Positions 3,553-51,330 of a stretch of DNA of 64,000 nt are shown in pieces. The notes beneath the pieces were generated by a model that did no database searches, was not told where the DNA came from, and worked only from the letters and a program-made list of their open reading frames with translations. The stretch covers positions 25,125,649 through 25,189,648 of the forward strand of contig NC_092398.1 of the NCBI RefSeq assembly GCF_030028105.1, written 5' to 3'. The stretch comes from Mobula birostris (Eukaryota). Each line of letters starts with the position of its first letter. The stretch's first letter is position 1. The translations under genes and the position numbers were made by a program.

Positions 3553-3811
3553 AATTCAGGGTCAGAACATTCTGGTAAACGCTCTCTGCAATGAAAGGGA
3601 CGAAGGCTTGGTATGGTTGACTTCAATGACAGCCAGGGGGTTGCAGTGGTTCAGGCCTCTGATGAAAGCTTCCAAAGTGAAACGCTGGCCCCGAATTTAC
3701 TCGCAGATAAATCAAAGTAGGTGACATCTTTGCCGTTATAACCAAGTCACAGGTCCGTTCTCGAGAACCACGAAGCTGTGCTGGAGTAGATTGTCTAACT
3801 GATGTGCATTC
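3553..3811 (-). pseudogene. Decayed MHC membrane-distal (beta1/alpha2-like) domain exon, paralog of 24885-25141
   Basis: Manual translation MHIS*TIYSSTASWFSRTDL*LGYNGKDVTYFDLSASKFGA...EAFIRGLN...PFIAESVYQNVLTLN aligns in register with the 24885-25141 exon. It has two stops and two frameshifts; the acceptor AG is changed to TG (3813-3812); the donor is GTATGT at 3552. Confidence 0.8.
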
Positions 3812-4226: not shown

Positions 4227-6845
4227 GATGTTTGTGGCCATGACAGAGACTTGGCTGCACCAGGGCAGGAATGGATTCTCAATATTCCTGGATTTCAGTG
4301 CTTTAAAAGGGATAGAGAGGGGGGAAATAGGGGAGGAGGGGTGGCATTACTGGGCAGGAATACTATTACAGCTACAGAAAGGGTGAGTAATTTAGCAGGA
4401 TCCTCTTTTGAGTCAATATGGGTGGAAGTCAGGAACAGGAAGGGTGCAGTTACTCTACTGGGGGTATTCTACAGGCCCCCTGGTAGCAGCAGAGATACAG
4501 AGGAGCAGATTGGGAGGCAGATTTTGAAAAGGTGCAAAAATAACAGGGTTGTTATAATGGGTGACTTTAACTTCCTTAATATTGATTGGCACCTGATTAG
4601 TTCCAATGGTTTATACAGGGCAGAGTTTGTTAAGTGTGTCCAGGATGGATTCCTGTCACAGTATGTTGACAGGCCGACGAGAGGGAATGCCATATTAGAT
4701 CTAGTATTAGGTAACGAATCGGGTCAGGTCACAGATCTCTCAGTGGGTGAACATCTGGGGGACAGTAACCGCCGCTCCCTGGCCTTTAGCATTATCATAG
4801 AAAAGGATAAAATCAGAGCGGACAGGAAAATTTTTAATTGGGGAAGGGCAAATTATGAGGCTATAAGGCTAGAACTTGCAGGTGTGAATTGGGATGATGT
4901 TTTTGCAGGGAAATATACTACGGACATGTATAGGGATGTTTAGGGATCTCTTGCGGGATGTTAGGGATAAATTTGTCCCGGTGAGGAAGATAACAAGTGG
5001 TAGGGTGAGGGAACCATGGATGACAAGTGAGGTGGAAAATCTAGTCAGGTGGAAGAAGGCAGCATACATGAGGTTTAGGAAGCAAGGATCAAATGGGTCT
5101 ATAGAGGAATATAGGGTAGCAAGAAAGGAGCTTAAGAAGGGGCTGAAAAGAGCAAGAAGGGGCCATGAGAAGGCCTTGGCGAGTAGGGTAAAGGAAAACC
5201 CCAAGGCATTCTTCAATTATGTGCAGAACAAAAGGATGACAGGAGTGAAGGTAGGACCAATTAGAGATAAAGGTGGGAAGATGTGCCTGGAGGCTGTGGA
5301 AGTGAGTGAGGTCCTCAATGAATACTTCTCTTCGGTATTCACCAATGAGAGGGAACTTGATGACGGTGAGGACAATATGAGTGAGGTTGATGTTCTGGAG
5401 CATGTTGATATTAAGGGAGAGGAAGTGTTGGAGTTTAAAATACATTAGGACAGATAAGTCCCCAGGGCCTGACAGAATATTCCCCAGGCTGCTCCTCGAG
5501 ACGAGGAAAGAGATTGCTGAGTCTGGCTAGGATCTTTATGTCCTCGTTGTCCACGGGAATGGTACCGGAGGATTGGAGGGAGGCGAATGTTGTCCTCTTG
5601 TTCAAAAAAGGTAGTAGAGATAGTCCGGGTAATTATAGACCTGTGAGCCTTACGTCTGTGGTGGGAAAGCTGTTGGAAAAGATTCTTAGAGATAGGATCT
5701 ATGGGCATTTATGGATTAGATTATGAAGACACGCAGTCCTCTCTTATTGTCATTTAGTAATGCATGCATTAAGAAATGATACAATATTTCCTCCGGAGTG
5801 ATATCACAAAACACAGGACAGACCAAGACTGAAAAAACTGACAAAACCACATAATTATAACATACAGTTACAACACTGCAACAATACCATAACTGATGAA
5901 GTAGTCCATGAGCACAGTAAAAGTTCAAAGTCTCTCAAATGTCCCACATCTCACGCAGACGGGAGAAGGAAGAACTCTCCCTGCCATGCCGACCACAGTC
6001 CGATTCTGAGTCATCCGAAAACTTCAAGCTCTGATCAGCTCTCCGACACCGAGTACTGAACGCCATCTCTGTCCGAACGATTCGACCTCAATCTTGGTCG
6101 CCAACAGCAGGCAAACCGGGGATTTTGAGGCCTACCCTCCGAAAGGTTCCCGACCACACAGTAACGACAGCAGCGAACGAGTGTTTCAGAAATTTCTCCA
6201 GATGTTCCTCTGTGCTTTCACATCCCTCTACATCAAATCAGAATTGTCCACGGCCCCTATTTAACGGATATGATATCATTTAGAGTTCTTTGAGGAGGTG
6301 ACCAGGCATATAGATGAGGGTAGTACTTGGAGTACTGTGTCCAGTTCTGGTCGGCTCACTACAGGAAGGATGTGGAAACATTGGAAAGGGTACAGAGGAG
6401 ATTTACCAGGATGCTGCCTGGTTTAGAGAGTATGGATTATGATCAGAGATTAAGGGAGCTAGGGCTTTTCTCTTTGAAGAGAAGGAGGATGAGAGGAGAC
6501 ATGATAGAGGTATACAAGATATTAAAAGGAATAGATAGAGTGGATAACCAGTGCCTCTTCCCCAGGGCACCACTGCTCAATACAAGAGGACATGGCTTTA
6601 AGGTAAGGGGTGGGAAGTTCAAGGGGGATATTAGAAGAAGGTTTTTTACTCAGAGAGTGGTTGGTGCGTGGAATGCACTGCCTGAGTCAGTGGTGGAGGC
6701 AGATACACTAGTGAAGTTTAAGAGACTACTAGACCGGTATATGGAGGAATTTAAGGTGAGGGTTATATGGGAGGCAGGGTTTGAGGGTTGGCACTACATT
6801 GTGGACCGAAGGGCCTGTACTGTGCTGTACTATTCTATGTTCTAT
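4227..6845 (+). mobile_element. CR1 LINE ORF2 (EN, part of RT, C-terminus), internally deleted and interrupted at about 5706-6282 by another repeat
   Basis: ORFs 4035-4943 (GVFYRPP, MGDFNF, PTRGNAILDL), 4894-5448, 5514-5726 (PEDWREANV, NYRPVSLTS) and 6327-7007 (EYCVQFWS, FFTQRVVGAWN). Confidence 0.92.
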
Positions 6846-12406: not shown

Positions 12407-12688
12407 CCCAAACTGCATGCAGCTTGTCAGGGACGCTCAGATGCTCGATTTCACAAGTGTAAGTGTCACCCTTCCCGGGGTCAATTTCGACCTGTAGCCG
12501 GACTTGGAACATCCTATCCTGGTTGGGTAAAATTTTCGTCATTAGCACTTCCTGATCGATCGCCACACCATTCCGCAGCCACGTTGCGTGGATTTTCTTG
12601 GGATAAAATCCATGCACTTGGCATGTCAGGGCCAAGTTATTCTCTCTGTTCTTCAGGTGTCTTGAGGTTATTGTGATCGTCGGCTTCG
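12407..12688 (-). CDS. MHC Ig-C1 domain exon (class I alpha3-like; W-category beta2 candidate)
   Basis: 282 nt (94 codons), phase 1/1, acceptor TTTCTGTCCACTGCAG, donor TGGG|GTAAGG. Protein: AKPTITITSRHLKNRENNLALTCQVHGFYPKKIHATWLRNG...ILPNQDRMFQVRLQVEIDPGKGDTYTCEIEHLSVPDKLHAVW, with the C1-set motifs LTC, GFYP, W, YTC. Confidence 0.93.
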
Positions 12689-13172
12689 CTGCAGTGGACA
12701 GAAATACATTGAAGCTGAACTTGGTTACAGGATCAGAAAAAGTAAAGAGCAACGGAATTTCAAAGTTCAAAGTATGTTTATTATTAAAGCATGTGTACGA
12801 TATACTTTATGTGAGAAGACTGCTGAACGGATCCTGACCCGGACCTGGGCCGTACCCTCCAAATATCCGGACCTGCCTCTCGGTTTTTTTGCACTACCTT
12901 ACTTTCTATTTTTCTATTTTCTATTTATGATTTATAATTTAATTTTTTAGTATTTACTATTGATTTGTAATCCAGGGAGAGTGAAGTGCAGAATCAAATA
13001 TCACTGTGATGATTGTACATTCTAGTATCAATTGTTTGGCGACAATAAAGTATAAAGTATACAACCTTGAGATTCCACCATAACGGAATGCTGGAACAGA
13101 CACAATGGGTCGAATGGCCTAATTCTGTTCCTATGTTTATTCACCTCCCTAGATGCTGCCTGGCCTGCTGAA

Positions 13173-13174
<2 letters not shown>

Positions 13175-13224
<50 letters not shown>
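13175..13224. repeat. (TG)25 microsatellite
   Basis: Direct count of the perfect TG run. Confidence 0.97.
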
Positions 13225-13226
<2 letters not shown>

Positions 13227-14719
13227 AGTGTGAGTGTGAGGCAATCCGGAACTGCTTTGGATTGCCACCATCTGCAGAATCTTTTGTGTTTAGAAACTGT
13301 CCCCGGTCATCTGCCTCTCACCAGCGGTATGGTTCTTTCAGTCACTCCCAAGTCACGAGTGTTCCAAGAACTGTCAGTAACCCAAAGTTTCCGTAAGGTG
13401 GAAATACTTAGAAATGAATATTTGCATGGTGAGGTTAATTAGTTACAGGTTAGTGCATATCAGAATCAGGTCTGATATCAATGACATAGACTCAGTGTCC
13501 ACTTTATTAGGTACGCCTGCTCATTAATATAAACCTCTAATCAGCCAATCATGTGCCAGCAACTCAATGCATAAAAGCATGCAGACGTTGTCAAGAGGTT
13601 CAGTTGATGTTCAGACCAAACATCAGAATGGGGAAGAAATACAATCTAATTAACTTTGACCATGGACCAGATGGGGTGGTCTGAGTATCTCAAAAACTGC
13701 TGATCTCCTGGGATTTTCATACACAACGGTCTCTAGAGTTCACAGAGAACGGTGCGACAAAGAAAAAACATCCAGCGAGCGGCAGTTTTGTGGGTGAAAG
13801 CACCTTGTTAATGAGAGAGGTCAGAGGAGGATGGCCAGACTGGTTCAATCTGACAGGACGAGGACAGTAACTCAAATCACCATGTGTTACAGCAGTGGTG
13901 TGCAGAAGAGCATCTCTGAACGTACAACATGTCACACCTCAAAGTGACTGAGCTGCAGCAGTGATTCCCAAGGGGAGTGCGGTATTGTATGATGTCATGG
14001 GGGAAGAGTGACACCCCTACTTGAGGCTCGAGACCTGACCGACCATTAGTAGACTAGGCACTTCCGACAAAAAGGATGAGGCACTGGAACACACAGGAAG
14101 AACCACAGCTCAGCAGGCGGTGAGCACCGTCATCACAACAAGTCTGAAATCTGACAATCTCATCCAACCTTACCAACCAAACAGACATTATTGGGGATGC
14201 ATAAATTAACAAACAGGCTGTCCAACAGTTACCCTTGACTGGCAGCACGGAACGAGTTCGTGCAATTTAATAGTTGATAGGTCAAGTACACCCTCTCAAC
14301 CTTCGCAACAGATCTATGGAAAACGGGTCACGCAACGATACAGCGCTGGCCGGAACCAAATGGAGAAATAGAGTCAATCAGTGAACCCGTCAACACTGAG
14401 GAATCCTCTTGAGGTGTTCAAAGTGACCTCAGCTTCATATGTGCGGTCAAGAACCATCTTTGGGGATTACGAGACCTTACTTGATTGGTCAATTGTGCTA
14501 ACTGGAATAGTAAGAAGATAGCCTCCCAAACACAAGCTCTGTCCCGACTAACATTCGATTCCAATCTGAATCCTTGTCAATGTAATTTTTGCAGTTGTGA
14601 TCGTCTTCACCTTTGCCTCGCTGTTCCTTTGCATACCGCTGCCACCGTTCCATCCGTGTCAACTCACTGCCGTCAGCATCCGATAGGCATTCCCAGTGGT
14701 GTTAATTTTTTTATTTTAA

Positions 14720-16195
14720 TTTAGCCCCGTTAACAATGGTTAAGTATGTACGGTGCGATCTCTACAAGTTTGAAGGCGGTGAAGCTTTGGATTCTAATCC
14801 TGCTAAGAAACAGAAATTACACAAAGTGTGTCAATACAAAGTTACATACCTGGAATATGGTTTTATTCCATCCCATTAGATCAGCAGCGCCCCATGTTTC
14901 CTATTTGTAATACTGTACTGTCTAATGAATCCATGAAACCATCAAGATTGCAGGAACGCTTCTGCAAAAAGACACCCTGAAAAGGCTACTTATGGTATTA
15001 CTGGGTTCTAGAAGATGAAAGAAGCATTGCAAAACCATTGCACACTCAAGTCATTTGCCAAGAAATGACCTTGTTTGTGGTCTCGTTGCTTCTTATATAA
15101 TTTCCAAAATGATAGCAAGGTGTGGAAAATCTCATACAATTGGTGAAAGATTAATAATGCCGGCTTTATGACAAGTGCTCACCACTGTTCTCAAAATGGA
15201 AACCAGTATTTTAAAATAATTTCCTCTATGCAATAGCTCATCGTATTGATGAAATGAGTGCAGACGTGGAATATCAACTTTGCACAGAGTCACAAAAAAA
15301 CAGAATTTGGGATACAACTGGATGAGTCAACAGTGTAAGGCAATGCGGCATTGCTAATGTCATATGTACAGTTTGTAAAATGTATATTGAGGATGAAAGT
15401 ATTTCAATTAGGAACATGAATTCTTGTACAAGAGATGGAGCACCATATATGACAGGTTGCCATGCCCGGTTTAGTGGCATTAATGAAAAAGAAATTCCAA
15501 GTCTGTTTGCAATCCATTGTGTAATTCATCGTCAACATCTCGCAGCCAAAAACTTCAGCTCGTGAGTTTTTTCAAGCATGACTCTTGTAATATCTGCTAT
15601 CAACAAAATTAAAGCTCATCCATTAAATAGCAGAATATTTCACCATTTATGCCAAGATAACAATGCAGAGATTGAACGCATGCTTCTTCACACTGAAGTG
15701 TATTGGCTGTCAAAAGGCTGCTGCTTAAAACATTTCTTTGATCTTTATGACACTGGTGGAAGTCAACAACATTGAACTTCTATATGGAGATGTGGCAAAC
15801 GAAGCCAATCTGTATGACAAACTGAATATTCTAAATATGAAACTGCAGGGTGAAAACTTCAATTTAATCCAGGCAAAAAATGCAGTGTCCACTTTTATCA
15901 GAAAATTGGAAATATGTAAACAAAACATTGGGAGAAGAATGTTCTCAGTTTCCCTGCATGGAAAGTATGGCACTCTCTTTCACAGGTAGTGATTTGCAAG
16001 AGTGCTCCTTACACCTGCAGTCACCGAAGAAAGATTTTCAGAATTGATTCAAGGATTGGAAAAATCCAGAAATTTCAGATTGGGTAATTAGCCCATTCCT
16101 TTGCAAGGTGGAAGAACAGAAAGGGAGCTTGCAAGAAGAAATTATCAAAATTCAGAATAAGGGAGAAGAAAAAATGCTTATTTAAAAATGTCGAC
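14720..16195 (+). mobile_element. Decayed hAT (Charlie/Buster, SCAND3/ZBED8-like) transposase fragment
   Basis: ORFs 15380-15989: CTRDGAPYMTG, IHCVIHRQHLAAK, RMLLHTEVYWLSKG, LNMKLQGEN. The same family occurs at about 45780-46789. Confidence 0.85.
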
Positions 16196-16199
16196 TTTT

Positions 16200-19100
16200 G
16201 GGACTTCCAGGTTGAGCATGGAGTGACTGGGTGCGTGTGAGTGTGGCTCCCAATTTTTATTGAAAATCTACCTGTTTATCTTTGCCGTATGCTCAAGATA
16301 ACTGAATATTTAACATTGTGAACAACTTGGGACGTTGCTAGACACTGAAATGGCAAATAAAATGTACCTTCGAAGTAAAACTGGAGAAAAAGATAGCAAA
16401 GCCTCGAGCAAGAAAGCTGATGTTACAGTAATGGTGCTGTTGCACGTTGCTGGACCTGGACCTGCACTGCCCGATGACTTGGAGAGGCTTTGTTTAGTAC
16501 TTCTTACTGACATGATGCAAGTGGGGAATTCTGCCCTAAACAGAGAACTTGAAGATGCTTTGTCACCAGTGAATGCTACCATGGAACAAATTATGTCTTA
16601 TTATCAGTCGCACGACGAACGCATTCGTGAGGTTGAAGATGGCCTGAATGATTACAGTGACTGGCTGGTGAGCGCCGAAGCCGCCATTGCAGCGTTGCAG
16701 AGTGAAAATGCATTTCTGAAGGGAAAGCTAGATGACCTCAAAAATCAGTCGCAGAGATCCAATTTGAGAGTGGTCGGCATTCCTGAAAATTTGGAAGGTT
16801 CGAACCCTGTTAAATTTATGACCGAGTTTCCTGACAAAGTACTGGGGACAAATTTCTTCCCAAGGCCTCTCGTGTTTTTGCGTGCTCACCGAGGCAGGCC
16901 TAAACCATCCGGTGTCTCTGAAGCTAAGCAAACAAGACCAAGAACGTTCCTGGTTCTCTTTCACTTCTTTAAGATAAGCAATGTATCAATAGATGGAAGC
17001 AGAAGCTGTATTTCCGTGGACATCGTGTGTTTTTTCATGAAGATTTTAGTGCGGAGCTGGGGAAAAAATGAGCAGCTTTCAAGGTGAAATCCCTGCTTTA
17101 CGGGAAAGGGGTCAGGTTTGGCCTCTTGTATCCTGCCTGGCTCCGGATCATGCATGAAGGTAAAAAACATTATTTCGATTCACCAGAGGCGGCCAAGGAG
17201 TTTTACCATTCGCACCGGGGAGAAGAAGAACGAGAAGAGCAATGACTTTTTTTTAGGTTATTCATGCAGCATTGAAGGGGCCTCCTGCCGAGGCAAACTG
17301 TTAATTTTCGCAATCCACTTCTTTGTTCATTTTTTTCCATTTTAATTTGAGGAACACAATTGGGTCGAACTGCTGTGCTGCGGAATCTGATTAACAAAAA
17401 CTTTCAACCAGCAAAATGTAAACATTCGGGATTTGTATCTCTGGCATTTAGTTTCCTAGTTTTTTTGAGATGTTTTGCTTGACCTGTGTTATCCTTAGCC
17501 TATATATATTAAAGGTAGAATAAGTGACGGTATAAATTTTAAGGAGGGGAGCCACCCTAGATTAGATTGAAAGTTTGGTTGTATGGGGAACGCTTTGGAA
17601 ATTTTTTGTTTGGTAATGCCTGCTATCATCCTCAGTTGGGGAGGTAGATCTAGTTTTCGGGGGTTAATTGGGTTTTTTTGTTGTTTGTGTAAAGGGGTGG
17701 GGGGGAGTGTTTTGGGGTATTTCCATGGCAGCTTATTGTTTTGTGTGTTATGGATTGGCCAGACTTTCTTTTCATTGTGCATTATTGTGTGCAGCTTGTG
17801 CCCTCGCACTGTTTGGATTGTAGGTCCTGTTTGTCTTTTGATATGGTTAACATGAGTGCTGCTGATGGAGTCCACCCTGTGAGGTTTACTTCTTGGAATG
17901 TAAAGGGGCTCGATGGTCCTGTTAAAAGAGCTAAAGTTTTCTCTCATCTGAAACAATTAAAAGTAGATATACTATTTCCACAAGAGACACATTTAAGAGT
18001 GGAGGACCATAATAGACTTTGTAAAGCGTGGATTAGTCAGGTTTTTCATTCCAGATTTAATAGTAGGTCCAGGGGAGGTGGCAATATTAATCACCAATAG
18101 AATGCAGTTTACACCATCTGATGTAATCAGTGACCCTAATGGTCGTTTTATTATAGTCTCTGGATCTCATTTTCAGATACCTGTCATTTTGGTAAATGTT
18201 TATGCCCCTAATTGGGATGGTCCACTTTGCAAATAAGGTTTTGTCATTAATACCTAACCTGAATACACACCAGCTAACCTGTTCAGGAGATTTGACCTGT
18301 GCTATTGACCCACTGCTTGATAGGTCTAGCTCTAGGGGAACATTTTCTGGTATAGCAAAGGCCTTCTCAATGTTTATGCAACAAAATCCAGGGCAAAAAT
18401 CAAAAAGGGCCACTTTTCAACATAATTGTATAAGGGCTAAGAGTGTTGTAAAAGCAAGCCTGAAGGCTTTGTGTGTCAATGCAAGGAGCATTCATAACAA
18501 GGTGGATGAATTGAATGTGCAGATAGTTATTAATGAATATGATATAGTTGGGATCACAGAGACATGGCTCCAGCGTGACCAAGGATGGGAGCTCAACATT
18601 CAGGGATATTCAATATTGAGGAGGGATAGACATGAAAGAAAAGGAGGTGGGGTGGCATTGTTGGTTAGTGAGGAGATTAATGCAATAGAAAGGAAGGACA
18701 TTAGCCGGGAGGATGTGGAATAGATATGGGTAGAACTGCATAACATTAAGGGGCAGAAAACGCTGGTGGGAGTTGTGTACAGGCCACCTAACAGTAGTAG
18801 TGAGGTTGGGGATGGCATTAAACGTGCAATAACGGAACAGCAGTTCTAATGGGTGACTTCAATCTACATATAGATTGGGTGAACCAAATTGGTAAGGGTG
18901 CTGAGGAAGAGGATTTCTTAGAATGTATGTGGGATAGTTTTCTGAACCAACACGTCGAGGAACCAACTAGACAGCAGGCCATTCTAGACTGGGTACTGAG
19001 CAATGAGGAAGGGTTAGTTAGCAATCTTGTTGTGCTAGGCCCCTTGGGTAAGAGTGACCACAATATGGTGGAATTCTTCATTAAGATGGAGAGTGATATA

Positions 19101-22100
19101 GTTAAATCAGAAACAAAGGTTCTGAACTTAAAGAAGGGTAACTCTGAAGGTATGAGACATGAATTAGCTAAGATAGACTGGCAAATGATACTTAAAGGGT
19201 TGACAGTGGATATGCAATAGCAAGCATTTAAAGATCGCACGGATGAACTACAACAATTGTTCATCCCAGTTTGGCAAAAGAATAAACCAGGGAAGGTAGT
19301 GCACCCGTGGCTGACAAGGGAAATTAGGGATAGTACCAATTCCAAAGAAGAAACATACAAATTAGCCAGAAAAAGCAGCACACCGGAGGACTGGGAGAAT
19401 TTCAGAGTCCAGCAGGGGAGGACAAAGGGCTTAATTAGGAAGGGAAAAAAGATTATGAGAGAAAACTGGCAGGGAACATAAAAACTGACTTTAACAGCTT
19501 TTATAGATATGTGAAAAGAAAAAGATTGGTTAAGACAAATGTACATCCCTTATGGTCAGAAACAGGTGAATTGATCATGGAGGACAAGGGCATGGCAGAC
19601 CATTTGAATAACTACTTTGGTTCTGTCTTCACTAAGGAGGACATAAATAATCTTCCGGAAATAGTAGGGGACTGAGGGTTTAGTGCGATGGAGGACCTGA
19701 GGGAAATACATGTCAGTAGGGAAGTGGTGTTAGGTAAATTGAAGGGATTAAAGGCAGATAAATCCCCAGGGCCAGATGGTCTGCATCCCAGAGTGCTTAA
19801 GGAAGTAGCCCAAGAAATAGTGGATGCATTAGTGATAATTTTTCAAAACTCTTTAGATTCTGGATTAGTTCCTGAGGATTGGAGGGTGGCTAATGTAACC
19901 CCACTTCTGAAAAAAGAAGGGAGAGAGAAACCGAGTAATTATAGACCATTAAGCCTGACATCGGTGGCGGGGAAAATGCTAGAGTCAGTTATCAAAGATG
20001 TGATAACAGCACATTTGGAAAGCGATGATATCATCGGACAAAGTCAGCATCGATTTGTGAAAGGAAAATCACGTCTGACGAATCTCATAGAATTTTTTGA
20101 GAATGTAACTAGTAGAGTGGATAGGGGAGAACCAGTGGATGTGGTATATTTGGATTTTCAAAAGGCTTTTGACAAGATCCACACAGGAGATTAGTGTGCC
20201 AACTTAAAGCACACGGTATTGGGGGTATGGTATTGATGTGGATAGAGAATTGTGTGGCAGACAGGAAGCAAAGAGTGGGAATAAACGGGACCTTTTCAGA
20301 ATGGCAGGCAGTGACTAGTGGGGTACCGCAAGGCTCAGTGCTGGGACCCCCATTGTTCACAATATATATTAATGACTTAGACGAGGGAATTAAATGCAGC
20401 ATCTCCAAGTTTGCGGATGACATGAAGCTGGGCGGCAGTGTTAGCTGTGAGGAGGATGCAGGGTGACTTGGATAGGTTAGGTGAGTGGGCAAATTCATGG
20501 CAGTTGCAATTTAATGTGGATAAATGTGAGGTTATCCACTTTGGTGGCAAGAAAAGGAAAACAGATTATTATCTGAATGGTGGCCGATTAGGAAAAGGGG
20601 AGGTGCAACGAGACCTGGGTGTCATTGTACACCAGTCATTGAAAGTGGGCATGCAGGTACAGCAGGCAGAGAAAAAGGCGAATGGTATGCTGGCATTCAT
20701 AGCAAGAGGATTCAAGTACAGGAGCAAGGAGGTACTACTGCAGATGTACAAGGCCTTGGTGAGACCACACCTAGAGTATTGGGTGCAGTTTTGGTCCTCT
20801 AATCTGAGGAAAGACATTCTTGCCATAGAGGGAGTACAAAGAAGGTTCACCAGGTTGATTCCTGGGATGGCAGGACTTTCATATGATGGAAGACTGGATC
20901 GACTAGGCTTATATTCTCTGGAATTTAGAAGATTGAGGGGGGATCTTATTGAAATGTGTAAAATTCTAAAGGGTTTGGACAGGCTGGATGCAGGAAGATT
21001 GTTCCCGATGTTGGGGAAGTCCAGAACGAGGGGTCACAGTTTGAGGATAAAGGGGAAGCCTTTTAGGACCGAGATGAGGAAAAACTACTTCACAAAGAGA
21101 GTGGTGAATCTGTGGAATTCTCTGCCACAGGAAACAGTTGAGGCCAGTTCATTGGCTATATTTAAGAGAGGGTTAGATATGGCCCTTGTGGCTAAAGGGA
21201 TCAGGGGGTATGGAGAGAAGGCAGGTACAGGGTTCTGAGTTGGATGATCAGCCATAGTCATACTGAATGGTGGTGCAGACTCGAAGGGCCGAATGGCCTA
21301 CTCCTGCACCTATTTTCTATGAAAATGGTTATATGGAACCTTGGAGATTTTTGAATCCATCAGTTAGGCAATTCTCTTTCTTTTCTCATGTTCACCACTC
21401 CTATTCCAGGCTAGACTATTTCTTTATAGAGAGCTCCTTGATACCAATGATTAGACAAATTGAGTACACTGCTATAGTTATATCTGATCACTCGCCCGTG
21501 AAACTGGACCTATGTTTTCCTTTAAACATTAGAGAACAGCCTCTGTGGAGACTTAACCCCCTTTTGCTTTCCAATGAGAAATTTTGTAGTTATATATCGT
21601 CTAACATTGACACATTTTTCCAGACCAACAAAACTGAGTCGGTATCGTACTCCTTACTTTGGGAAACTTTAAAAGCTTACTTGAGGGGTCAAATAATATC
21701 TTATACTTCACATGCCAATAAAGAGCATGGGAAGGAAATGTAAGTGTTATCGCAATCTATTTTGGACCTGGATAGGCAATATTCTGAGGCACCCACTGCA
21801 GAATTACATAAAAGCTGGGCTGATTTGCAAGCGAAGTTTAATCTTCTCTCTACAAACCTATCAGAACAATTAATTCTTAAGACACGTTGCCTCTATTATG
21901 AAAATGGTGACAGGGGGAGCCGGCTTATGGGAGAGTCAAGCTGCATCACGACTTATTCCCCAGATAAGAGACACGCACCAAAGCTTGACAAGCAATCCAA
22001 AAGAGATTAATAACATCTTTGCAACTTTTTATTCCTCTCTATATGCCTCAGAGTTTCCATCAGATATAATGAATATGGAACATTTTTTTGATAATTTGGA

Positions 22101-23900
22101 AATACCAAAGGAACCAGAGGAGGTGGAGAATTTAGATTGGGCTCTTGGGCAGGAAGAGATTAATAATGCCATTATGGCTATGCAGAGTGGTAAGTCCCCA
22201 GGTCCTGATGTTTATCCAATAGAATTTTATAAGAAATTTAAGGATAAGCTCATACCGGTCCTTCTAGAAGTGTTTCAGGAATCTTTGGAGAATGGTCCCT
22301 TACCCCCTACTCTTTCACAGGCATCTATTTCACTTCTTCTTAAAAAGGACAAGGACCCGACTCAATGTGGATCATATCGCCCCATCTCACTTTTGAATGT
22401 GGATGTGAAAATTTTGGTGAAGTGCTTGCGTGCCGTTTAGAACGCCCCCTTCCCAAGATAATCTCAGATGATCAAACAGGTTTTATTAAAAATTGCCATT
22501 CTTTTTTTAATATCCGTCAACTGGCTGACGTGGTTTACTCACCCAGTGTTTCTCCGAGTCCGGAGGTTGTTATTTCCTTGGGCACGGAGAAGGCGTTTGA
22601 TAGAGTGAAGTGGGTATACTTGTTTAGTGTTTTGGAGAAATTTGGATTTGGCAGAATATTTGTAGCCTGCGTTAAGCTATTATATCACTTGCCTTTAGCG
22701 TGTATACAGACAAATTATTTTCGATCTGACTATTTCCCATTAACACGTGGCACGCACCAAGGCTGCCCATTGTCCCCTCTTCTTTTTGCAATTGAGCCTC
22801 TTTCTATTGCACTTTAAGTCAACTACATTATTTCAAGGTGTTAGGAGAGGGAACGTGGAACACCGTGTATCCCTATATGCTGATAACCTCTTACTTTACA
22901 TTAGCAACCCTGCAAGTAGCAGTCCTGCTATTGAGTCATTATTAGGTCAATTTGGAGCCTTCTATGGCTATAAACTGAACCTTCAAAAAAGCAAATGATT
23001 TCCCATTAATAACTTGGCCCTAGAGATCCGACAGGAATCTTTGCCTTTTCTTTTATCTCAAGATAGTTTTGTATACCTAAGAATGCACATTACTTGCTCT
23101 TTTACATCTCTGTTTGAAGCTAATTACAGGTCTCAGGTTAGCCAAATGAAGGCTGATTTTGAAAGATGGCGCAGTTTACCCCTTACTATAGCTGGGAGAA
23201 TTCAATCAGTGAAAATGACTATACTTCCCAGATTTCTTTATTTGTTCCAGTGCTTGCCAATTTTCTTATCTAAGCTACCCTTCAAATCAGTCGGCCAAGG
23301 TATAACCTCCTTTATTTGGGAAAATACGGTCCTAAGGGTTAATGAGCGCACTCTCCAAAGAGGTCGTGACATAAGTGGAATGGGTCTTCCTAGCTTTATT
23401 CATTATTACTGGGCATCAAACATTCAAAAGGTATTATTTTGGCTCCACCAGCCAGATATAAACTGGTGCCCGCTTGGGACATGGTCTTGCCACTCCTCGT
23501 CTCTCCCAGCTTTACTGTATTCTTCCTTACCATTGAAATCCTCTCAATTCACATCTAACTCAGTCATGCTCTCCACCGTCAAAATTTTTAATCAATTTCG
23601 CTCCACTGTAAGTTCACATCAGCTTCAGTTTTGGGTCCCATTCATAGAAACCATCTATTTCTTCCCTCCACAATCAATTCATCTTTGCAACAATGGGGTT
23701 TGAACGGTCTTGTGCGCATTAAGGATTTGTACACTGTTAACATATTGATAGTTTTGATAAACTGTGCAGTAAATATAGCCTTCCGCATAATCATTTTTTT
23801 AATACCTGCAGATTCGCCACTTTGTCAAGGAAACATTTCCCTCTTTTCTTGGTCTACCACCTGCTATGTTGTGGGAAAAACTCATTCTTTGCTTTAATGA
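16200..23900 (+). mobile_element. L1-clade LINE (5' UTR, ORF1, disrupted ORF2; 3' end missing), interrupted by a CR1
   Basis: Starts GGGACTTCCAGG. ORF1 16335-17087 (coiled coil, SQRSNLRVVGIPE, RAHR). ORF2 starts near 17852 (RFTSWNVKG) and resumes after the CR1 (GYMEPWRFLNP, SRLDYFF, SDHSPV, GKSPGPD, YRPISLLNVD, RGTHQGCPLSP, SLYADN). Confidence 0.92.
18390..21320 (+). mobile_element. CR1 LINE, most of ORF2, inserted in the L1 endonuclease region
   Basis: ORFs 18196-21238: [46 protein letters not shown]. It ends with the CR1 3' UTR and a (TTTCTAT) tail. Confidence 0.93.
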
Positions 23901-24339
23901 TAAAGGGCTGATCTCTGTACTATACTCTCAGCTGATGTCTTTGAGGCATCACTCCTTGAAGATTCCTGAATGCTAAGGAGGCTCGTACCCATGATGGAAC
24001 ATGACTGAGTTCACAACTTTCTGCAGCTTCTTTCAACCCTTTGCAGTATCTACACCCCCTACCCCCATGTGCAGCCAGTTATACCTCTCCACGGTAAATC
24101 TGTAGAAATTTATGTGCATCTTTGACATACCAAATCTCCTCAAACTCGTAATGAAATGTAGTCACTGTCGTGCCTTTTTGTAACTGCCTGATTATGTAGG
24201 ACCCAGGATAGATGCTCAGAGATATTGCCACCTAATAACTTGAAATTGCTCACTCCCTCCACTTCTGATTCCTCTTTGAGGACTGGTGCATGTGTTCCCT
24301 TGTTTTGCCCTCTCTGTCAGCCTCTGCCACACAGCCTGC

Positions 24340-24855
24340 TTGAACATCGCTTTGAAAACAAAACTTTAATTCCACTTCCCACTCCCATGCCACGGCCTCC
24401 TCTTCTTTCAGGATGAGGCCACACTCAGGTTGGAGGAGTAACATCTTATATTCCACGTGGGTAGCCTCCAACCTGATTGCATGAACCTCGACTTCTCGAA
24501 CTTCCAGTAATGCCCCCCCCACTTCATCATTCCCCATTCCCTTTTCCCTCTCTCACCTTACCTGCACATCACCTCCCTCTGGTGCTTCCCCCCTTTCTTT
24601 CTTCCATGCCCTTCTATCCTTTCCTATCAGATTCCTCCTCCTCCAGCCCTGCACCTCTTTTCCCAATCAACTCCCCAGCTCCTTACTTCACCCCTCTCCA
24701 CCTCCTAACTCTGACTCCTCAACTTGTTTCTCCAGTCCTGATGAAGGGTCTCAGCCCGAAACGTTGACTGTACTCTTTTTCATAGATGCTGCCTGGCCTG
24801 CTGAGCTCCTCCAGCACTTTGTGGGTGCTGCTTGGATTTCCAGCATCTGCAGATT
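24340..24855 (+). mobile_element. Penelope-like element 3' fragment (GIY-YIG C-terminus and terminal repeat)
   Basis: ATLRLEE.HLIF..GSLQPD-type coding remnant and terminal GATGAAGGGTCTCAGCCCGAAACG...CAGCATCTGCAG. Related pieces lie at about 9140-9375 and 27340-27720. Confidence 0.75.
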
Positions 24856-24884
24856 TTTTTTTTTTTTTGTGAAAATAAACTTAC

Positions 24885-25141
24885 CCGTCAGAGCTTGAAC
24901 AGCCTGGTGAACGATCTCCATGGCAAAAGGCATGTCATTAACATAGCGGGCAACATCTATGATAATCTTTCGATTGCAGTTCAGATCGTCCACGAAAGAC
25001 TTTACAGTGGATTGATGGCCACAATCTTTCCTGTGGCATAATCAAAGCGAACAGCTACTTCGCCAGTGTAAGCAAACTGCAGGGTAGCCATTGAGAACTC
25101 CAAACCTTTACCAGAGAAAGTCACTTGACCGATGTGCATTC
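24885..25141 (-). pseudogene. MHC membrane-distal domain exon (class II beta1 / class I alpha2-like), with -1 frameshift
   Basis: Acceptor TTACTTGCCAG|GA, donor ACGG|GTAAGT, 257 nt. Repaired translation: GMHIGQVTFSGKGLEFSMATLQFAYTGEVAVRFDYATGKIVAINPLxKSFVDDLNCNRKIIIDVARYVNDMPFAMEIVHQAVQALT. Without repair there is a TAA at 25004-25002. Confidence 0.85.
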
Positions 25142-25269
25142 CTGGCAAGTAAATAATAATCGATCCATTAACCATTTGTGAGAGTGAAATGGTTCATTTT
25201 AAAACCTTAAAATTAATCAAACTGAAAGAACAAATTTTTCTCTCCCTTCTGTGGATACCACACCATTCT

Positions 25270-26290
25270 GACAGCAAAAAGGTGCCACTCCTCCAGAGCC
25301 ACCTCTCCCTCCCACCGTAAAACTCCAATAGTTGGGATTTGGTGGTGGTGCTGCTGACCTTTCACCCCCACTCTCGGCACCCTCCTTTTCCTCAGCTTGA
25401 TGCCCACGTCCCCACCCGCCTCTTCACCCAAACCCCTCCTTGCCATCGAAGTGCCCTTCCCTCAACACCTGTCCCCACAGACATCTCTCCTCACCGTCCA
25501 CACCCAACTCTCCACCCACCCCCTCTCTCCCTACCCACCCTCGGTGACTACTTCCCTCCCTCTCCAAACATCCTTGGCAGTCCCTCCCCACCCACTCACC
25601 CATGGCCCCCTCCCCTCTCAATCTCCATGCCCTCTATCCTCCCCACTCTCTGCACTCCCACAACTCCACTCCTCAGCCTTCCATCCCACCCTTAGCACCC
25701 CTTTCCCTCCCCACACACCTTTGGCACCCTAATTCCTTTCCCACACAACCATCCCCAATGACCCCTCCCCTTCTGCCATCCCCTCAACGATACTCAATCC
25801 ACTCCTTTCCCTCCCTACTTGCTCTCTCACAGTGCGTCCTTCCCTTCCCATGCCCATTCGATGCCCTCTCCCCTCTCCTTTGGAACCCCCTGCCCTCCCA
25901 TGGTGCCTACTCCACTACTCTCCATTGGCACTCCCTCCTCCCCACCCTCCATTGGCACCCTTCCCCTCAGCTCTCTACCCTCCTTTGGTGCTCACTCCCC
26001 ACCCTGCCTCAATGTCACTCCCCTGTCCTCCCCATCCTCCATCGGTGCCCATTCCCCTCCCCTCTTAACTTTCCCTCAGTTCTCCTCCCCACCCTCCCTT
26101 GGTGCTACTCTCTCCACCTTCCTTCAGCGAGGTCTCCCTTTCCCTCCTGACCTTTACCCTCCCCTCCCTCCCTAGTTGCCCTCTTCCCTCTCTTGCCCAC
26201 CCTCCCTCAGTGTCCCCACCCCCCTCTACCTCCCTACGCTCCATCGGTGCCCCCTCCCCCGGCGCCTCCCATCCCTGGGGCGCTGCGCTC
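25270..26290. repeat. C-rich low-complexity tract (G-rich on the sense strand) filling intron 1
   Basis: Dense CCCT/CCAC runs. All ORFs here are Pro/Ser/Leu compositional artefacts. Confidence 0.85.
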
Positions 26291-26620
26291 CTCACCCAGG
26301 GCAATGGAGCCGTTGTGGAGGAGGAGGAGGAGGAAGGCGGCGAGCAGAGAGGGAGAGCGGCGTCGCCTCACGCCGGCCGGCGGCTCCTGAGACAGCGGGA
26401 GGAGCAGCTGGCTCACGGTTCGCGGAGACGGCATCATTCCCCACATCCCTTCCGCCGAAGGCTGAGGACCTCGTCACACAGCCGCTACGCACGAAACCGA
26501 TCGCCAGCCGGCAGGTCCCGTAACGGGAGGCGATCGATGTAGAAGTTTCCCCGACTGAGTGGGCGGCCGCTGCCACAGACAGGCGGGGCGAGGCGGGAGG
26601 GAAGGCCTTTTGTTTCAACT
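26260..26620. promoter_or_regulatory. CpG island / promoter of the minus-strand gene
   Basis: CpG-dense against a CpG-poor background, with GC boxes (GGCGGGGC) upstream of the leader ATG. Confidence 0.7.
26296..26437 (-). CDS. Leader (signal peptide) exon 1 of the MHC-like gene
   Basis: MMPSPRTVSQLLLPLSQEPPAGVRRRRSPSLLAAFLLLLLHNGSIAL-G, phase-1 donor CTGG|GTGAGG, within a CpG island. The exact start codon is uncertain. Confidence 0.8.
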
Positions 26621-32534: not shown

Positions 32535-32846
32535 TGAAGCCAATCCCGAGACCCGGCGAGCCGGCACCTGCCAGAGACTGCGCATGCGCTCGTCATCCGG
32601 CCGCCCGCCGCTGATTGGCTGCCGCGGCTTCCCGCCAGAGACACTCCCCGCCCTCTCTCCGGCACGTGACTCCGCCAGCGGCCGGGCCGCTTCTTCACTC
32701 TCTTCGGCGTTGCCAGAAGCGGAGGAGCGAGGCCGGGGCTGGGACTAGGGCGGTACGTTGGGCGGGGAGAATGGCGGGGGCGTCGCCTCCTCCTGCCTCC
32801 TGCATCTTACCTCCAGCCGCTCTTTGCTTTTGGCACAGTCGCAACC
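32535..32846 (+). promoter_or_regulatory. CpG-island promoter with CCAAT/Y box, X2-like CGTCATC, NRF1 palindrome, E-box and GC boxes
   Basis: CCAAT near 32540, TGCGCATGCGC 32579-32589, CGTCATC 32591-32597, CTGATTGG 32611-32618, CACGTGAC, GGGCGGGG. Confidence 0.7.
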
Positions 32847-32922
32847 ATGGGTCGATATGGCGCCGCCTGTGCGCTCCTCCTGCTCCTCGTCGCTCGTTCG
32901 GGAACTGACAGCTCGGCGGCCG
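32847..32922 (+). CDS. Signal-peptide exon 1 of a plus-strand gene (candidate MHC W-category alpha-chain partner; downstream exons not found)
   Basis: Strong Kozak context GCAACCATGG, MGRYGAACALLLLLVARSGTDSSAA-G, phase-1 donor G|GTGAGT. Identity is inferred only from position and exon phase. Confidence 0.75.
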
Positions 32923-34313
32923 GTGAGTTGATTTCTGTCGCGGGGATCACCGCTCTTGCTGCAGACTGTGGGATCTTGTGGAGTTTACCGGACTTTTCTA
33001 CCTTCTTCCCAATGGGAGGTGTGTGTGGCATCTCTAAGGGGCATAAATTGGGTGAAGGCAGATAGCCCTTTTTTCCAGTATAGGGAATTCAAGAACTAGA
33101 GGACAAAGGTTTACGTAAGAGGGGAGAGATGTAATAGGAACCTGAGGGACTGCTTTTCCACAGAAAATGTGGTTCATATCTGGAACCAGCTGCCAGAGTT
33201 TAGGATGGAATGGTTGAGGCAGATATATTAACAATGTTGAAAATACGTCTGGACAGCTACATAGGCATAAGGCACATGAGCAGAATTAGGCCATTCAGTC
33301 CATCGAGACTGTTCCACCATCTATTATTAGCTCTGTTATTTTCTCAACCCCATTCTCCTGTTTCCTCCCATAACATTTGATGCCCTTTCTGACGAAGAAT
33401 CTATCAATCTCTGCTTTAAATATACACAATGACTATGCCACCACATCCAACTGTGGCAATGCATTCCATCAGCTGCAACATGTTCCAGCAAAAGAAATTT
33501 CTCCTCACCTCTGACTTAAAGCCTCCTATTCTGAGGTTGTGACCCCTGGTGCTATTGGAAACTCTCTCTCCACGGCCACTCTATCCTGGCCTTTCGATAT
33601 TCCATAGATTTCAATGAGAATCCCCACCCCAATTCCATAGGTTTCAATGAGAATCCCCACCCCAATTGAAAAGGAGGAGGTGATTGCTCTCTTGAGGCAA
33701 ATTAAAGTGGATAAATCCCCAGGACCTGACAGGGTGGTCCCTCGGACCTTGAAGGAGACTAGTGTTGAAATTGCAGGGGCCCTGGCAGATGTATTTAAAA
33801 TGTCGGTGTCTACGGGTGAGGTGCCAGAAGATTGGAGAGTGGCTCATGTTGTTCCGTTGTTTAAAAAAGGATCGAAAATTAGTCCGGGAAATTATAGGCC
33901 AGTAAATTTGACGTTGGTAGTGGGTAAGTTATTGGAGGGAGTACTAAGAGACAGAATCTACAAGCATTTGGATAGACAGGGACTTATTAGGGAGAGTCAA
34001 CATGGCTTTGTACATGGTAGGTCATGTTTGACCAATCTATTGGTGTTTTTTGAGGAGGTTACCAGGAAAGTGGATGAAGGGAAGGCAGTAGATGTTGTCT
34101 ACATGAACTTGAGTAAGGCCTTTGACAAGGTCCCGCATGGGAGATTAGTTAGGAAAATTCAGTCGCTAGGTATACATGGAGAGGTGGTAAATTGGATTAG
34201 ACATTGTCTCAATGGAAGAAGCCAAAGAGTGGTAGTAGAGAATTGCTTCTCAGAGTGGAGGCCTGTGACTAGTGGTGTGCCACAGGGATCAGTGCTGGGT
34301 CCATTGTTGTTTG

Positions 34314-37300
34314 TGTTACGTACCCCGTAACTGGGTTGCCAATCCAGAAGAAATGGACCACTTAGTTGGAGTCTGGATAACTGGAACTAAGAAAGTTTTA
34401 TTAAAGAAATAAGTAACACAGTACTCTAATCGTAAGGATATAACTGCAACGGGTTAGCAATGATAAAACACACATGTACACAGAACTAGAATAATAGGAA
34501 TCAATCAAGCTCTATCGCAGTCTAGGGGTAAAATGATGAGTCTCAAGTGACGCAGAGCTCAGTTCAACTTAGTACAGTTCGCAGTAATCGCTGTTGTGCC
34601 GTTGGAGAGAGAGCGCGAATGATGATATGCAAATCGAATTCAGACAGACCTTGATGTTCCTCCGCAGTTAGCTTTTGGACTTTTTAATGTCTTCTGAGGT
34701 CACCGACTGTGACCCCTCTGTTCCGAATACGATCGTTCTTCCGCAGTGAACCCGGCACCCAGGCAAGGGCGGACACACACACCAGGTTCCCGCTGATCGT
34801 ACCTTTTCACCCTGTGCGTCTATGGTCAGACCCGCGACCAGACCTCCAAAACTCCCACCAACTTGGGGCACAGCGCATTTCCAGGGTCTCGTTATCTCGT
34901 GATCTCGTGGTGTCTGTCTTGCCTTAGCAAACCTGTTCCTTTTATCCCCCTGCTGGGGTATCGCCTGTCCATCAAACTTCAAACAGTTCAGGTTCAAAGC
35001 AACCCATCTGACAATACTCGGAACTGTGTCTCTCTTCGTTAATCTCTCTCGTCTCTCATTAACATTTCCGAATGCTGCTCCATTGGCTCACCTATCACTC
35101 TCATTAGCATCAATCTTCTGATAACTTGGTCTTTTGTCACGCCCCTATCCTTCAAAGGATTTTTACCGGGGTAAAAATTATAGGCATGAATACATTATTA
35201 GATACACACAAATATACATGGTCATCAATTATTTGGCTAATACAGAGAACTTTAAGTTGTCAACACCTTGACAGACAGTCAGCAATCACATTTTCCGTTC
35301 CTTTTATATGTTTTATTTTTATATCAAATTCCTGTAGCACCAGGCTCCAATTTAGCAATCTTTTGTTTTTATTTTTCATAGTGGCCAAAAACACTAATGG
35401 GTTGTGATCAGTGTAAATGACCAGTGGTTTCTGTGCCAGGCAAATATAAACCTCAAAATGTTGTAATGCTAGTATGATGGCCAGTAACTCTTTCTCCACA
35501 GTGGAAAAATTTCTCTGATGGATATTAAATTTCTTAGAAAAATAAGCGACTGGGTGATCAATCCCCCTCCTTGTCTGTCTGCAACAGCACCGCCCCGGCT
35601 GCTTCGTCGCTAGCATCTGTTGCTAGGGAGAAGGGTTTCGAAAAGTCAGGCGCATTCAGCACAGGATAGTGACACAAAATCGCCTTCAGACTCTCGAAGG
35701 CTTGTTGAGACAAAGGTCGTCCCACACAAACTTCGCATTCTTTGGCAAGAGCTTAGTAAGAGGGAGGGTAATATCCGCAAAGTTTTTGCAAAACTTCCTA
35801 TAGTACCCCACCATCCCCAAGAACCTTCTCAGGGCTCTCTTGTCTGTCGGGGTGGGGACTTCCGAGATAGCCCGCACCTTAGCCTGCATCGGAGCCAGCT
35901 GCCCCTGTCCTACCACAAATCCCAGATAAGTGACCTTTGCATGGCCGAACTCACTTTTTGCGAGGTTTACTGTCAGGTTGGCTTCGGACAGCCGTTTAAA
36001 CAGCTCCTCTACTGCCACAATGTGCTCCTCCCACGTGTCACTCCAGACTACTAAATCATCAATATACGCTTCTGTGTTCCTTAATCCCTTTATCCCTGAA
36101 TTAATCATCCTCTGGAAGGTCCCTGGGGCAGTTTTCATGCCAAAAGGTAAAACATTATACTCATATAACCCGGATGGAGTGACAAATGCTGAGATTTCTC
36201 TAGCCCGGTCGGTTAAAGGAACACACCAGTACCCTTTCAGCAAATTGATCTTTGTGATGTACTTAGCTCTCCCCACTTTATCGATTTTCTGTAATCTGTA
36301 CAGAATCGGATGCTCCCATCGACTTTCGGGACAACCACACGGGGACGCCCATTCCGACTTGGATGGCCTAATAATATCTGTGGCTAGCATGTGCTCAATT
36401 TCTTTCTCCACTAGCTTGCCCTTCTCCAAGTTCATCCTACGGGGGTGTTGTTTAATAGGCTGGTCTGAGGTGACAACAACATCATGCACCGTCCCTTTGC
36501 ATCGCCTCGGGACATACATCGGCGTGCCGGTTAATTAGCTTTATCAATGGCCCGCTCCGTTCGGGGGTTAGGTGAGAGACCTTATCAGCCAAATTAGCCA
36601 GAACAATAGAGTTCTCCAATCAGGTCGGGACCATATTTATTTTTTCAAAATGGGTTTTCCCCCTATCATTCGACACCCCAGTCTCATTAATTTTCGTGAT
36701 AACACCAACTAGATCTGCTTTCTGATCGTGGTAAATTTTAACATGTTAATGTGTACTAACTGTGTGGGTTTACGCCTGTCCGGTGTTTTGATAACATAAT
36801 TCAAAGGGTCTATCTTTTTAATTACCTTGTACGGACCATGGAATCTCGCCTGGAGGGGGTTGGTTACCACTGGGAACAGAACTAAGACCCGATCGCCCAC
36901 TTGGAACACTTGTTCGCGGGCATGCCTATCATACCATTGTTTCATTTTAGTTTGGGAGTGTCGCAGATTTTCTTTGGCAAGGTCACAGATCCTTTCAAGC
37001 CTGTCACGAAATTTTAAAACATAATCAATCACATTAACTTGGACTGCTGAACTGGACCATTGCTCTTTCAGTAAGGTCAGGGGTCCTCTGGGCCGATGAC
37101 CGAAGACGAGCTCAAATGGGCTGAACCCCAATGACTCTTGAACCGTGTCCCTCACAGCAAATAACGAGAGGGGCAAAGCATCATCCCAGCCCCTAGCGTT
37201 CTCTTGACAGTAAATTTTAATCATTGTCTTTAATGTGGCGTGGAATCGTTCCAACGCCCCTTGGGACTCTGGGTGGTATGCGGAGGCCAAAATCTGCTTT

Positions 37301-40300: not shown

Positions 40301-40673
40301 GACACACACACCAGGTTCCCGCCGATCGTACCCTTTCACCCAGTGCGTCTATGGTCGGTCCCGCGATCAGACCTCCAAAACTCCCACCAACTTGTGGGGG
40401 CACAGCGCACTTCCAGGGTCTCGTTACCTCGTGATCTCGTGGTGTCTGTCTTGCCTTAGCAAACCTGTTCCTTTTATCCCCCTGCTGGGGTATCGCCTGT
40501 CCATCAAACTTCAAACAGTTCAGGTTCAAAGCAACCCATCTGACAATACTCGGAACTGTGTATCTTTTCATTAATCTCTCTCGTCTGTCACTAACATTTC
40601 CGAATGCTGTTCCATTGTCTCACTTATCTCCCTCATTAGCATCAATCTTCTGATAACTTGGTCTTTTGTCACA
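34314..40673 (-). mobile_element. Gmr1-like Gypsy LTR retrotransposon (SCAN-gag, protease, integrase, RT, RNase H), both LTRs, decayed
   Basis: LTRs 39821-40673 and 34314-35141; 4-bp TSD TTTG (34310-34313 / 40674-40677). PBS TGGGGTTCTCGTCCGCGAT resembles the tRNA-Pro PBS, and a purine-rich tract precedes the 3' LTR. Motifs: CYNCGKAGHFASRC, RDTGA, HHCC, GALERF, YIDDLV, VIYTDHNPL. Integrase precedes RT. Confidence 0.95.
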
Positions 40674-51255: not shown

Positions 51256-51330
51256 ATGGGTCGATATTGCACTGCCTGGGCGCTCCTCCTGCTCCTCCTC
51301 CTCGTTCGGGGACTCACAGCTCGGCGGCCG
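51256..51330 (+). pseudogene. Frameshifted duplicate of the plus-strand signal-peptide exon
   Basis: Near-identical to 32847-32922 but 75 nt instead of 76. The 1-nt deletion moves the GTGAGT donor to phase 0 (MGRYCTAWALLLLLLLVRGLTARRP). The Y box is mutated to CTGATCGG. Confidence 0.85.

Follow-up and report, generated by a model that had tools for sequence, protein, structure and literature searches.

Our results support the conclusion that a gene on the minus strand of a 64,000-nucleotide (nt) stretch of DNA from the giant manta ray Mobula birostris (hereafter the window) is a duplicate W-category beta-chain (WB) gene of the major histocompatibility complex (MHC) that belongs to the WB_DS1 lineage and is most likely a weakly transcribed, unprocessed pseudogene. 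The W category is defined by class II-type alpha/beta architecture combined with class I-type interface residues (Okamura 2021, PMC8713811); its defining residues are Q6, A32, G35 and D37 in the beta1 domain and, in the beta2 domain, P57 together with the absence of W61, position 61 being mostly G (PMC8713811). The window copy has kept the exons for its leader and its two extracellular domains, and we regard it as most likely a pseudogene, and not a functional WB gene, because its beta1 frame is broken by a 1-nt deletion and no membrane-anchor exon was found within 23 kb downstream of its C1 exon. The window maps to CM057584.1 of GCA_030028105.1, in agreement with the initial annotation, which had predicted a ray as the host from the sequence alone. 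The parts of the gene are as follows.

26296 to 26446, minus strand: exon 1, the 5' coding part and signal peptide (MWGMMPSPRTVSQ...LLLLLHNGSIAL-G), with a phase-1 donor GT at 26295
25142 to 26295, minus strand: intron 1, 1154 nt, purine-rich and of low complexity; relatives go from leader to beta1 directly
24885 to 25141, minus strand: exon 2, the WB beta1 (membrane-distal) domain, 257 nt as against an in-phase 258
25002 to 25006, minus strand: lesion, loss of one T between 25006 and 25005, with an in-frame TAA at 25004-25002
12689 to 24884, minus strand: intron 2, 12,196 nt, with open reading frames (ORFs) resembling long interspersed elements (LINEs) and reverse transcriptase throughout, from the ORF list
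12407 to 12688, minus strand: exon 3, the WB beta2 immunoglobulin (Ig) C1-set domain, 282 nt, with P57 kept and no W61

The GT/AG borders of these three phase-1 minus-strand exons (leader, one distal domain and one Ig-C1 domain) are as the initial annotation had proposed. The leader ends with CCCTGG/gtgagg at 26296, the beta1 exon runs from ttgccag/GAATGCAC at 25141 to CTGACGG/gtaagt at 24885, and the C1 exon runs from ctgcag/CGAAGCCG at 12688 to TTTGGG/gtaagg at 12407. The leader start has to be moved, since 26437 is the second Met and the ATG sits at 26446. The leader shows 100% identity with residues 1-50 of P0002 from M. birostris, and 94% with the leader sequences of P0003, P0004 and P0008 from M. 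hypostoma. Intron 1 (26295-25142) has the length of 1154 nt and the low complexity ascribed to it, and the layout is class II-like, as claimed, because a class I alpha1 exon neither fits into this intron nor has left a trace in it; in intron 2, searches by tblastn with full-length relatives and with a C1 profile returned no further MHC-like exon. The gene thus has the leader, single distal exon and single C1 exon of a class II-type plan and one distal-domain exon in place of the two (alpha1 and alpha2) of class I, and intact relatives of 269-291 amino acids (aa) have one distal domain in the order leader, beta1, beta2, with no extra domain. All of the motifs quoted earlier (GMHIGQ, QFAYTG, VRFD and LPNQDRMFQ) are present, and the position of NGDW has no Trp. 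The C1 exon matches the Pfam C1-set family (6.5e-17) and class I, MR1 and class II chains in PDB (down to 1.5e-26).

The assignment to the W category made in the initial annotation is upheld by profile ranking, both domain trees and most of the signature residues, and the lineage can be specified as WB_DS1. An exhaustive search of 1.84 billion representatives with a profile built from three intact ray proteins returned, after the ray paralogues, P0013 from Cetorhinus and P0157 (Carcharodon XP_041035565.1) as the best normal-length matches (1.7e-55), next Stegostoma P0019 (8e-39), Leucoraja P0021 (3e-38) and Chiloscyllium P0031, and lower down the WB_DS3-like P0039 (8.8e-31), class I (~1e-27) and class II beta (~1e-22). 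The beta1 domain of P0157 is letter for letter the row labelled 'great white shark WB DS1L' in Okamura Dataset S1 (PMC8713811), and the row for its transmembrane (TM) region matches too, which ties the labels used here to those of Okamura 2021. The beta1 and beta2 sequences, and the TM sequences of the relatives, align with the WB_DS1 rows of Datasets S1-S3 of that study.

Separate phylogenies of the C1 and distal domains, which had been suggested as a check, agree with this placement: neither domain groups with cartilaginous-fish class II beta, and the C1 domain stands apart from class I. For these trees, the C1 domain and the 95 residues preceding it were cut from proteins, with the broken window codon entered as X, and set against 8 cartilaginous-fish class II beta (including Mobula P0171), 8 other class II beta, 4 DM/DO-like and 16 class I sequences; one WB_DS3 was included, and no WB_Nds5L or bony-fish WB sequences. 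In the C1 tree, the window and the ray proteins form a group (support 99/98) that is joined by shark WB_DS1 (98/88), with cartilaginous-fish class II beta as a separate clade (100/99) and class I as a separate group (93/83). In the beta1 tree, the window groups with P0008 (99/83), all W sequences form a group (85/87), and W joins class I alpha2 (99/96), away from all class II beta1 sequences. Cartilaginous-fish class II beta is again separate (99/99); the union of W beta1 with class I alpha2 is the published hallmark of WB beta1. Approximately unbiased (AU) tests rejected a group of the ray sequences with cartilaginous-fish class II beta for both the C1 domain (p=0.0006) and beta1 (p=0.012). 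For the C1 domain they also rejected a union with all class II (p=0.023) or with class I (p=0.025); for beta1, which is poorly resolved, neither of these unions was rejected.

The signature residues largely point the same way. In beta2, P57 is present and W61 absent, the window reading L-P57-N-Q-D-R61-M-F-Q and the intact relatives ILPNxDGTFQ, so that at position 61, where class II beta has an invariant W, the window has R and its relatives G. The beta1 interface residues Q6, A32 and G35 are present in the window (GMHIGQ, FAYTG). At beta1 position 37, for which the WB definition gives D37, the window and P0008 have V, H. akajei has D and houndshark WB_DS1 has E.

The beta1 exon of the window copy is broken by a single-nucleotide deletion. 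At the lesion the DNA reads CCA CT^G TAA AG, and the intact form is CCA CTT GTA AAG (P-L-V-K), with NP(L/I)VKSF at this site in intact relatives; beta1 therefore reads ...AINPL-TAA and then, one frame over, VKSFVDDLNCNRK...QALT (VKSFVDDLNCNRKIIIDVARYVNDMPFAMEIVHQAVQALT). The initial annotation had treated the frameshift as something to be repaired; it is instead a genuine lesion that is present in independent reads. DNA run X18 has the extra base in 0 of 9.7 depth, and it is not merely the same consensus again because 13 further differences from the window occur in 1.8 kb of its contigs. A 161-nt contig from RNA library X22 is identical to the window across the lesion. DNA run X23, which carries another organism code, has the extra base in 3.17 of 3.17 depth. 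The 1-nt deletion is therefore real, not a product of assembly, and yet it is not universal. The TAA halts translation after 45 beta1 residues, and the predicted product from the leader ATG consists of the signal peptide and these 45 residues only. A second change concerns the C1 domain, in which DGTFQ, invariant in 10 of the 10 aligned intact ray and shark relatives, has become DRMFQ (G61R, T62M).

The C1 exon is 100% identical to part of the M. birostris RefSeq protein XP_072102720.1 (P0001), a product of 144 aa that bears the name 'DLA class II histocompatibility antigen, DR-1 beta chain-like'. The RefSeq model comprises the last 16 codons of the beta1 exon, the C1 exon and a 33-aa tail, its start codon being an internal Met of the distal exon (MPFAMEIV...), and its product lacks a signal peptide. 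The gene had been called cryptic, and it is indeed only partly annotated, although RefSeq already models the end of beta1 and the C1 domain. Neither the leader-started manta product nor the 144-aa RefSeq product could form a membrane heterodimer. Genes of this kind are seldom annotated, and in the giant manta the whole W-category family goes by the name 'class II beta chain-like' only.

The window copy also has no recognisable membrane anchor. No exon for the connecting peptide (CP) and TM region, of the type VPKNTYPVYGYVIGIIAGIIG, was found with exact peptides, tblastn or a TM profile in the window or in locus L001 (window positions 1-34933 reversed, plus 11 kb past the window start), a search that reached 23.4 kb past the C1 exon. 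The CP, TM and cytoplasmic (CY) parts with beta-chain-type TM glycines that are typical of WB genes are thus absent from the window copy and present in intact paralogues, and this is a lesion of the window copy, not a failure of the family placement. In their stead the RefSeq model ends in a 33-aa tail that is not a TM region and derives from a non-MHC element present in two copies. The relevant features are listed here.

L001 35837-35938, ~0.9-1.0 kb before the window start: annotated terminal exon encoding the RefSeq tail
5843 to 6281, minus strand: second copy of the ~490-nt element, 72% identical
6279 to 6359, minus strand: non-MHC sequence that is the alternative terminal exon of isoform X3 of the M. 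hypostoma orthologue, tail VSRPELDTVLQV... (tblastn, P0284 residues 202-228, 100% identity)

The annotated terminal exon sits within the ~490-nt non-MHC element (L001 35700-36300), and the RefSeq tail was not found inside the window by exact-peptide and profile searches. Both copies of the element (the second at 5843-6359 when the X3 sequence is included) provide an alternative terminal exon: the tail AVHNPDVMETDV... ends anchorless WB transcripts in both Mobula species, and VSRPELDTVLQV... those of M. hypostoma isoform X3. Three M. hypostoma models (P0283, P0004 and P0284) are recognised as the orthologue by the tails that they have in common with the manta, the tail of isoform X2 being 94% identical to the manta tail and that of isoform X3 100% identical to window positions 6359-6279. 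All three isoforms are without the anchor and without the last 27 beta1 residues; the orthologue has an F to S change in the GFYP motif, and its frame is open through the site of the manta lesion.

The locus had also been called divergent; instead, it is ~86-91% identical to intact paralogues, with 91% identity in the C1 exon and 86% in the beta1 exon to P0008, an intact M. hypostoma protein of 291 aa. Intact M. hypostoma members are XP_062891132.1 and XP_062891130.1 (P0008 and P0155, 291 and 320 aa), XP_062890833.1 (P0003) and P0005, and XP_072884196.1 (P0006) of Hemitrygon akajei is another ray protein with a complete frame. The WB_DS1 family of the giant manta is expanded into several paralogues. 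One of them, XP_072102492-494 (P0282, P0002 and P0281), lies on the same chromosome and has a TM region and G61; its isoform X1 begins at an internal beta1 Met (MATLQFAY), and its isoform X2 omits beta1 and has a leader 100% identical to the window leader. This better manta paralogue may therefore have irregularities of its own; alternatively, the paralogues may have a leader in common or have exchanged it by gene conversion.

Transcription of the window copy appears to be low. The exact-match contig of X22 spans 24936-25095 with the flanking intron uncovered, and RNA libraries such as X22 can contain DNA. No 26296/25141 joint was seen in either RNA library, and leader depth was zero in both, part of the leader having been skipped as a repeat. 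A well-covered contig of 763 nt from X1 ends exactly at the predicted donor 24885 and has 2 mismatches in 50 nt, which fit the M. birostris paralogue P0282 (AMGIVHQAVQTLT); it therefore confirms this border for the family and not the expression of the window copy. It is the paralogue P0282, not necessarily the window copy, that appears to be well expressed.

In our model, intact members of the family encode a class II-style chain made up of a signal peptide, beta1, C1, connecting peptide, transmembrane and cytoplasmic parts, and this chain, by analogy to the salamander chains studied in Okamura 2021, may pair with a WA alpha chain and reach the cell surface via class I-like interdomain contacts. 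The window copy still has good splice sites on its exons for leader, beta1 and beta2, and its annotated transcripts end in exonised non-MHC sequence. We suggest that the gene arose by duplication, that the anchor was lost before M. birostris and M. hypostoma split, and that independent, species-specific lesions then broke the frame; the pseudogene would lie in a partly decayed WA/WB cluster. Judging from the sequence, neither pairing with WA nor arrival at the surface is expected for the window copy, given its stop codon and missing anchor.

Several observations weigh against this interpretation. The frame is intact at the lesion in X23, and the frameshift may therefore be polymorphic or species-specific and not fixed. 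Much of the gene is well kept, namely its splice sites, its signal peptide and the greater part of both domains, as the identity to intact paralogues attests; the locus is not silent, given a contig in RNA library X22 that matches the beta1 exon exactly; and a CP/TM exon could sit more than 23 kb downstream of the C1 exon, more than 11 kb before the window start and outside the searched DNA. The in-frame X23 DNA, the intact exon borders and signal peptide, the exon-matching RNA contig and the anchorless tail exon common to M. birostris and M. hypostoma (94% identical) would suit a working but unusual WB gene, of which the undeleted allele encodes an anchorless chain that is secreted or held via its WA partner and the reference represents a null allele. 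We consider such a gene unlikely in view of the three of three M. hypostoma models without the end of beta1 and with a changed GFYP motif, the G61R and T62M substitutions at invariant positions and the origin of the tails as exonised copies of a non-MHC element, with two alternatives in use; moreover, no precedent for an anchorless WB chain was found in Okamura 2021. It is similarly improbable that an anchorless WB_DS1 variant has been retained since before the Mobula split, with a null allele segregating in the reference manta; if this were true, in-frame alleles would encode a W-category chain that is either soluble or tethered by its partner, a form that would be new to this MHC category.

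The pseudogene interpretation also has to be set against two readings in which the lesion or the family would be misjudged. It is very unlikely that a faulty assembly or consensus has created the frameshift in a gene that is intact as far as its C1 exon: although the missing base falls within a short T/A run (CTT to CT) and one short-read DNA run, X23, has the extra base, it is absent from X18 despite the 13 other differences of that run from the window, the X22 contig matches the window exactly across the site, and the anchor exon would still be missing if the frame were open. The name that RefSeq uses, 'DR-1 beta chain-like', would suggest that the gene is a divergent member of conventional class II beta or is DM/DO-like, a reading that is largely refuted and to which we give hardly any credence. 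The architecture is class II-like, intact ray beta1 domains pass the Pfam MHC_II_beta model, if weakly (24.3 and 28.2 bits with a cut-off of 20.9), and the sole match of an intact beta1 in a PDB sequence search was chicken class II beta (E=0.06). However, Pfam gave no match for the two beta1 pieces of the window, and this null result and the E-value of the PDB match mark single-sequence methods as too weak for beta1. A shark WB_DS1L matches MHC_I and MHC_II_beta equally, below threshold, and a genuine Mobula class II beta matches neither; Pfam does not discriminate here. Moreover, beta2 is without W61 and beta1 without the disulfide cysteines, beta1 groups with class I alpha2 and not with class II beta1, true cartilaginous-fish class II beta is separate in both trees with its union rejected by the AU tests, and Mobula has a classical class II beta of its own, P0171.

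Reading the window copy as a decaying duplicate makes its decay datable: the loss of the anchor, which M. hypostoma has in common with the manta, would be the earlier event, and the breaks of the frame, which differ between the two species, the later one. This is of use in annotating ray MHC regions and in choosing intact paralogues, not the window copy, for expression. Knowledge of the W category itself is left unchanged by the window copy.

The neighbourhood of the gene contains a second, older WB beta1 sequence.

3553 to 3811, minus strand: WB beta1 pseudo-exon with its acceptor AG lost (ctg for cag) and a TAG at the Q6 codon

This pseudo-exon has several indels and frame breaks and <60% nt identity to exon 2, with which it has the first 12 bases alike, GAATGCACATC[A/G]; no matching C1 exon was found within 14 kb downstream of it. 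We considered a special frameshift shared by both beta1 exons and rejected it, as the missing base of the older exon aligns best ~7 nt away, and a nearby break is unremarkable there because of the lost acceptor, the stop at codon 6 and the other indels. The order beta1, C1, element, followed by pseudo-beta1 and element, hints at an old tandem duplication of the unit. A C1 profile detected no second C1-set exon of any kind in the 64-kb window, and there is hence no complete WA partner in it; L001 likewise contains no second C1 exon.

Further along, the ORFs 32615-32922 and 50942-51334, both on the plus strand, are similar, GC-rich (…MAGASPPP…) and ~18 kb apart, and resemble a duplicated promoter/leader region. 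The divergent leader at ~32.85 kb (ORF 32615-32922) is the 5' end of a public call for a 251-aa product with SRCR domains, and motif and Cys-rich scans on the other side of this leader found no SRCR exon in the window. In M. hypostoma (GCA_963921235.1), a public call beside P0005 on the opposite strand has a 473-aa product composed of SRCR, SRCR and C1-set domains, and a 321-aa C1-set product near P0005 has a gene range that overlaps two WB genes; these calls may reflect a genuine SRCR-Ig combination or else models of a WA/WB cluster that are fused or read through. Introns and flanks at 13176-24300, 33600-44000 and 53200-57900 are densely filled with ORFs of LINE/reverse-transcriptase, retroviral gag-pol-like and transposase-like type. 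In all four read runs, word depths reach 10^4-10^6 over a short interspersed repeat at ~24730-24830.

W-category genes are known from sharks and skates, including a WB_DS1-like gene of a batoid, the little skate (Okamura 2021, PMC8713811), and rays and sharks are ~280 million years apart (date quoted in the supplementary information of Okamura 2021, PMC8713811). The WB_DS1 lineage of the great white shark pairs with WA_DS10L (Okamura 2021 supplementary information, PMC8713811), and a WA/WB heterodimer and its surface display have been shown for recombinant chains of the tiger salamander only (PMC8713811). Published rows for comparison are those of houndshark WB_DS1 beta1, GTHITQFM..LSAAYDGTEFIQFNYS (PMC8713811 Datasets S1-S3), of the little skate WB_DS1-like gene, LQFAFDGEEFIRFEYS and AKPAITITSRR..LTCRVDGFYPMDINTTWLRNG (PMC8713811), and of the WB_DS1 TM region, GYVAGIVIGVAGIIIALAGGI (PMC8713811); in alignment, the manta sequences follow the patterns of these WB_DS1 rows. 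Shark WB_DS1 and WB_DS1L genes (banded houndshark WB_DS1_n1, great white XP_041035565.1) have the same phase-1 leader, beta1 and C1 plan as the window. They also have in common with it the beta1 pattern G-x-H-I/M-x-Q ... L-x-F-A-Y-x-G-x-x-x-x-x-F-N/D-Y-x-T and, in beta2, the start AKP(S/T)(I/V)xIT, P57 without W61 and a counterpart of the ILPNxDGTFQ loop. Unlike them, the window copy has a 1-nt deletion in beta1, R61 and M62, V at position 37 in place of D or E, and no CP/TM/CY exons.

The intact Mobula and stingray paralogues are closer still, with a near-identical leader and common family-specific residues, yet they differ from the window copy in having an unbroken beta1, G61 and T62, and CP/TM/CY parts (VPKNTYPVYGYVIGIIAGIIGIL...GGMIRWK) with a class II beta-type glycine pattern. 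Leucoraja erinacea XP_055521770.1 (P0021), the little skate protein, belongs to the same lineage in another batoid, and its beta2 and TM regions align closely; the skate sequence is partial in both sources, and the manta family by contrast has several paralogues. Cartilaginous-fish class II beta genes (M. hypostoma P0171, Chiloscyllium plagiosum P0179) have the same architecture and C1-set fold, but W61 is present in them (SDGDWTYQ) and they form a separate clade in both trees. The nearest parallel for a damaged copy is banded houndshark WB_DS1_n2, which the Okamura 2021 supplementary information (PMC8713811) describes as a possible pseudogene seen only in an aberrant fused cDNA. Like the window copy, it is a duplicated WB_DS1 locus with unusual transcripts and apparently no normal full-length mRNA, a parallel by description only, and one that concerns a different species and an independent duplication. 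The window copy is thus a damaged new member of WB_DS1, in a category of which batoid members and a probable houndshark pseudogene had already been described.

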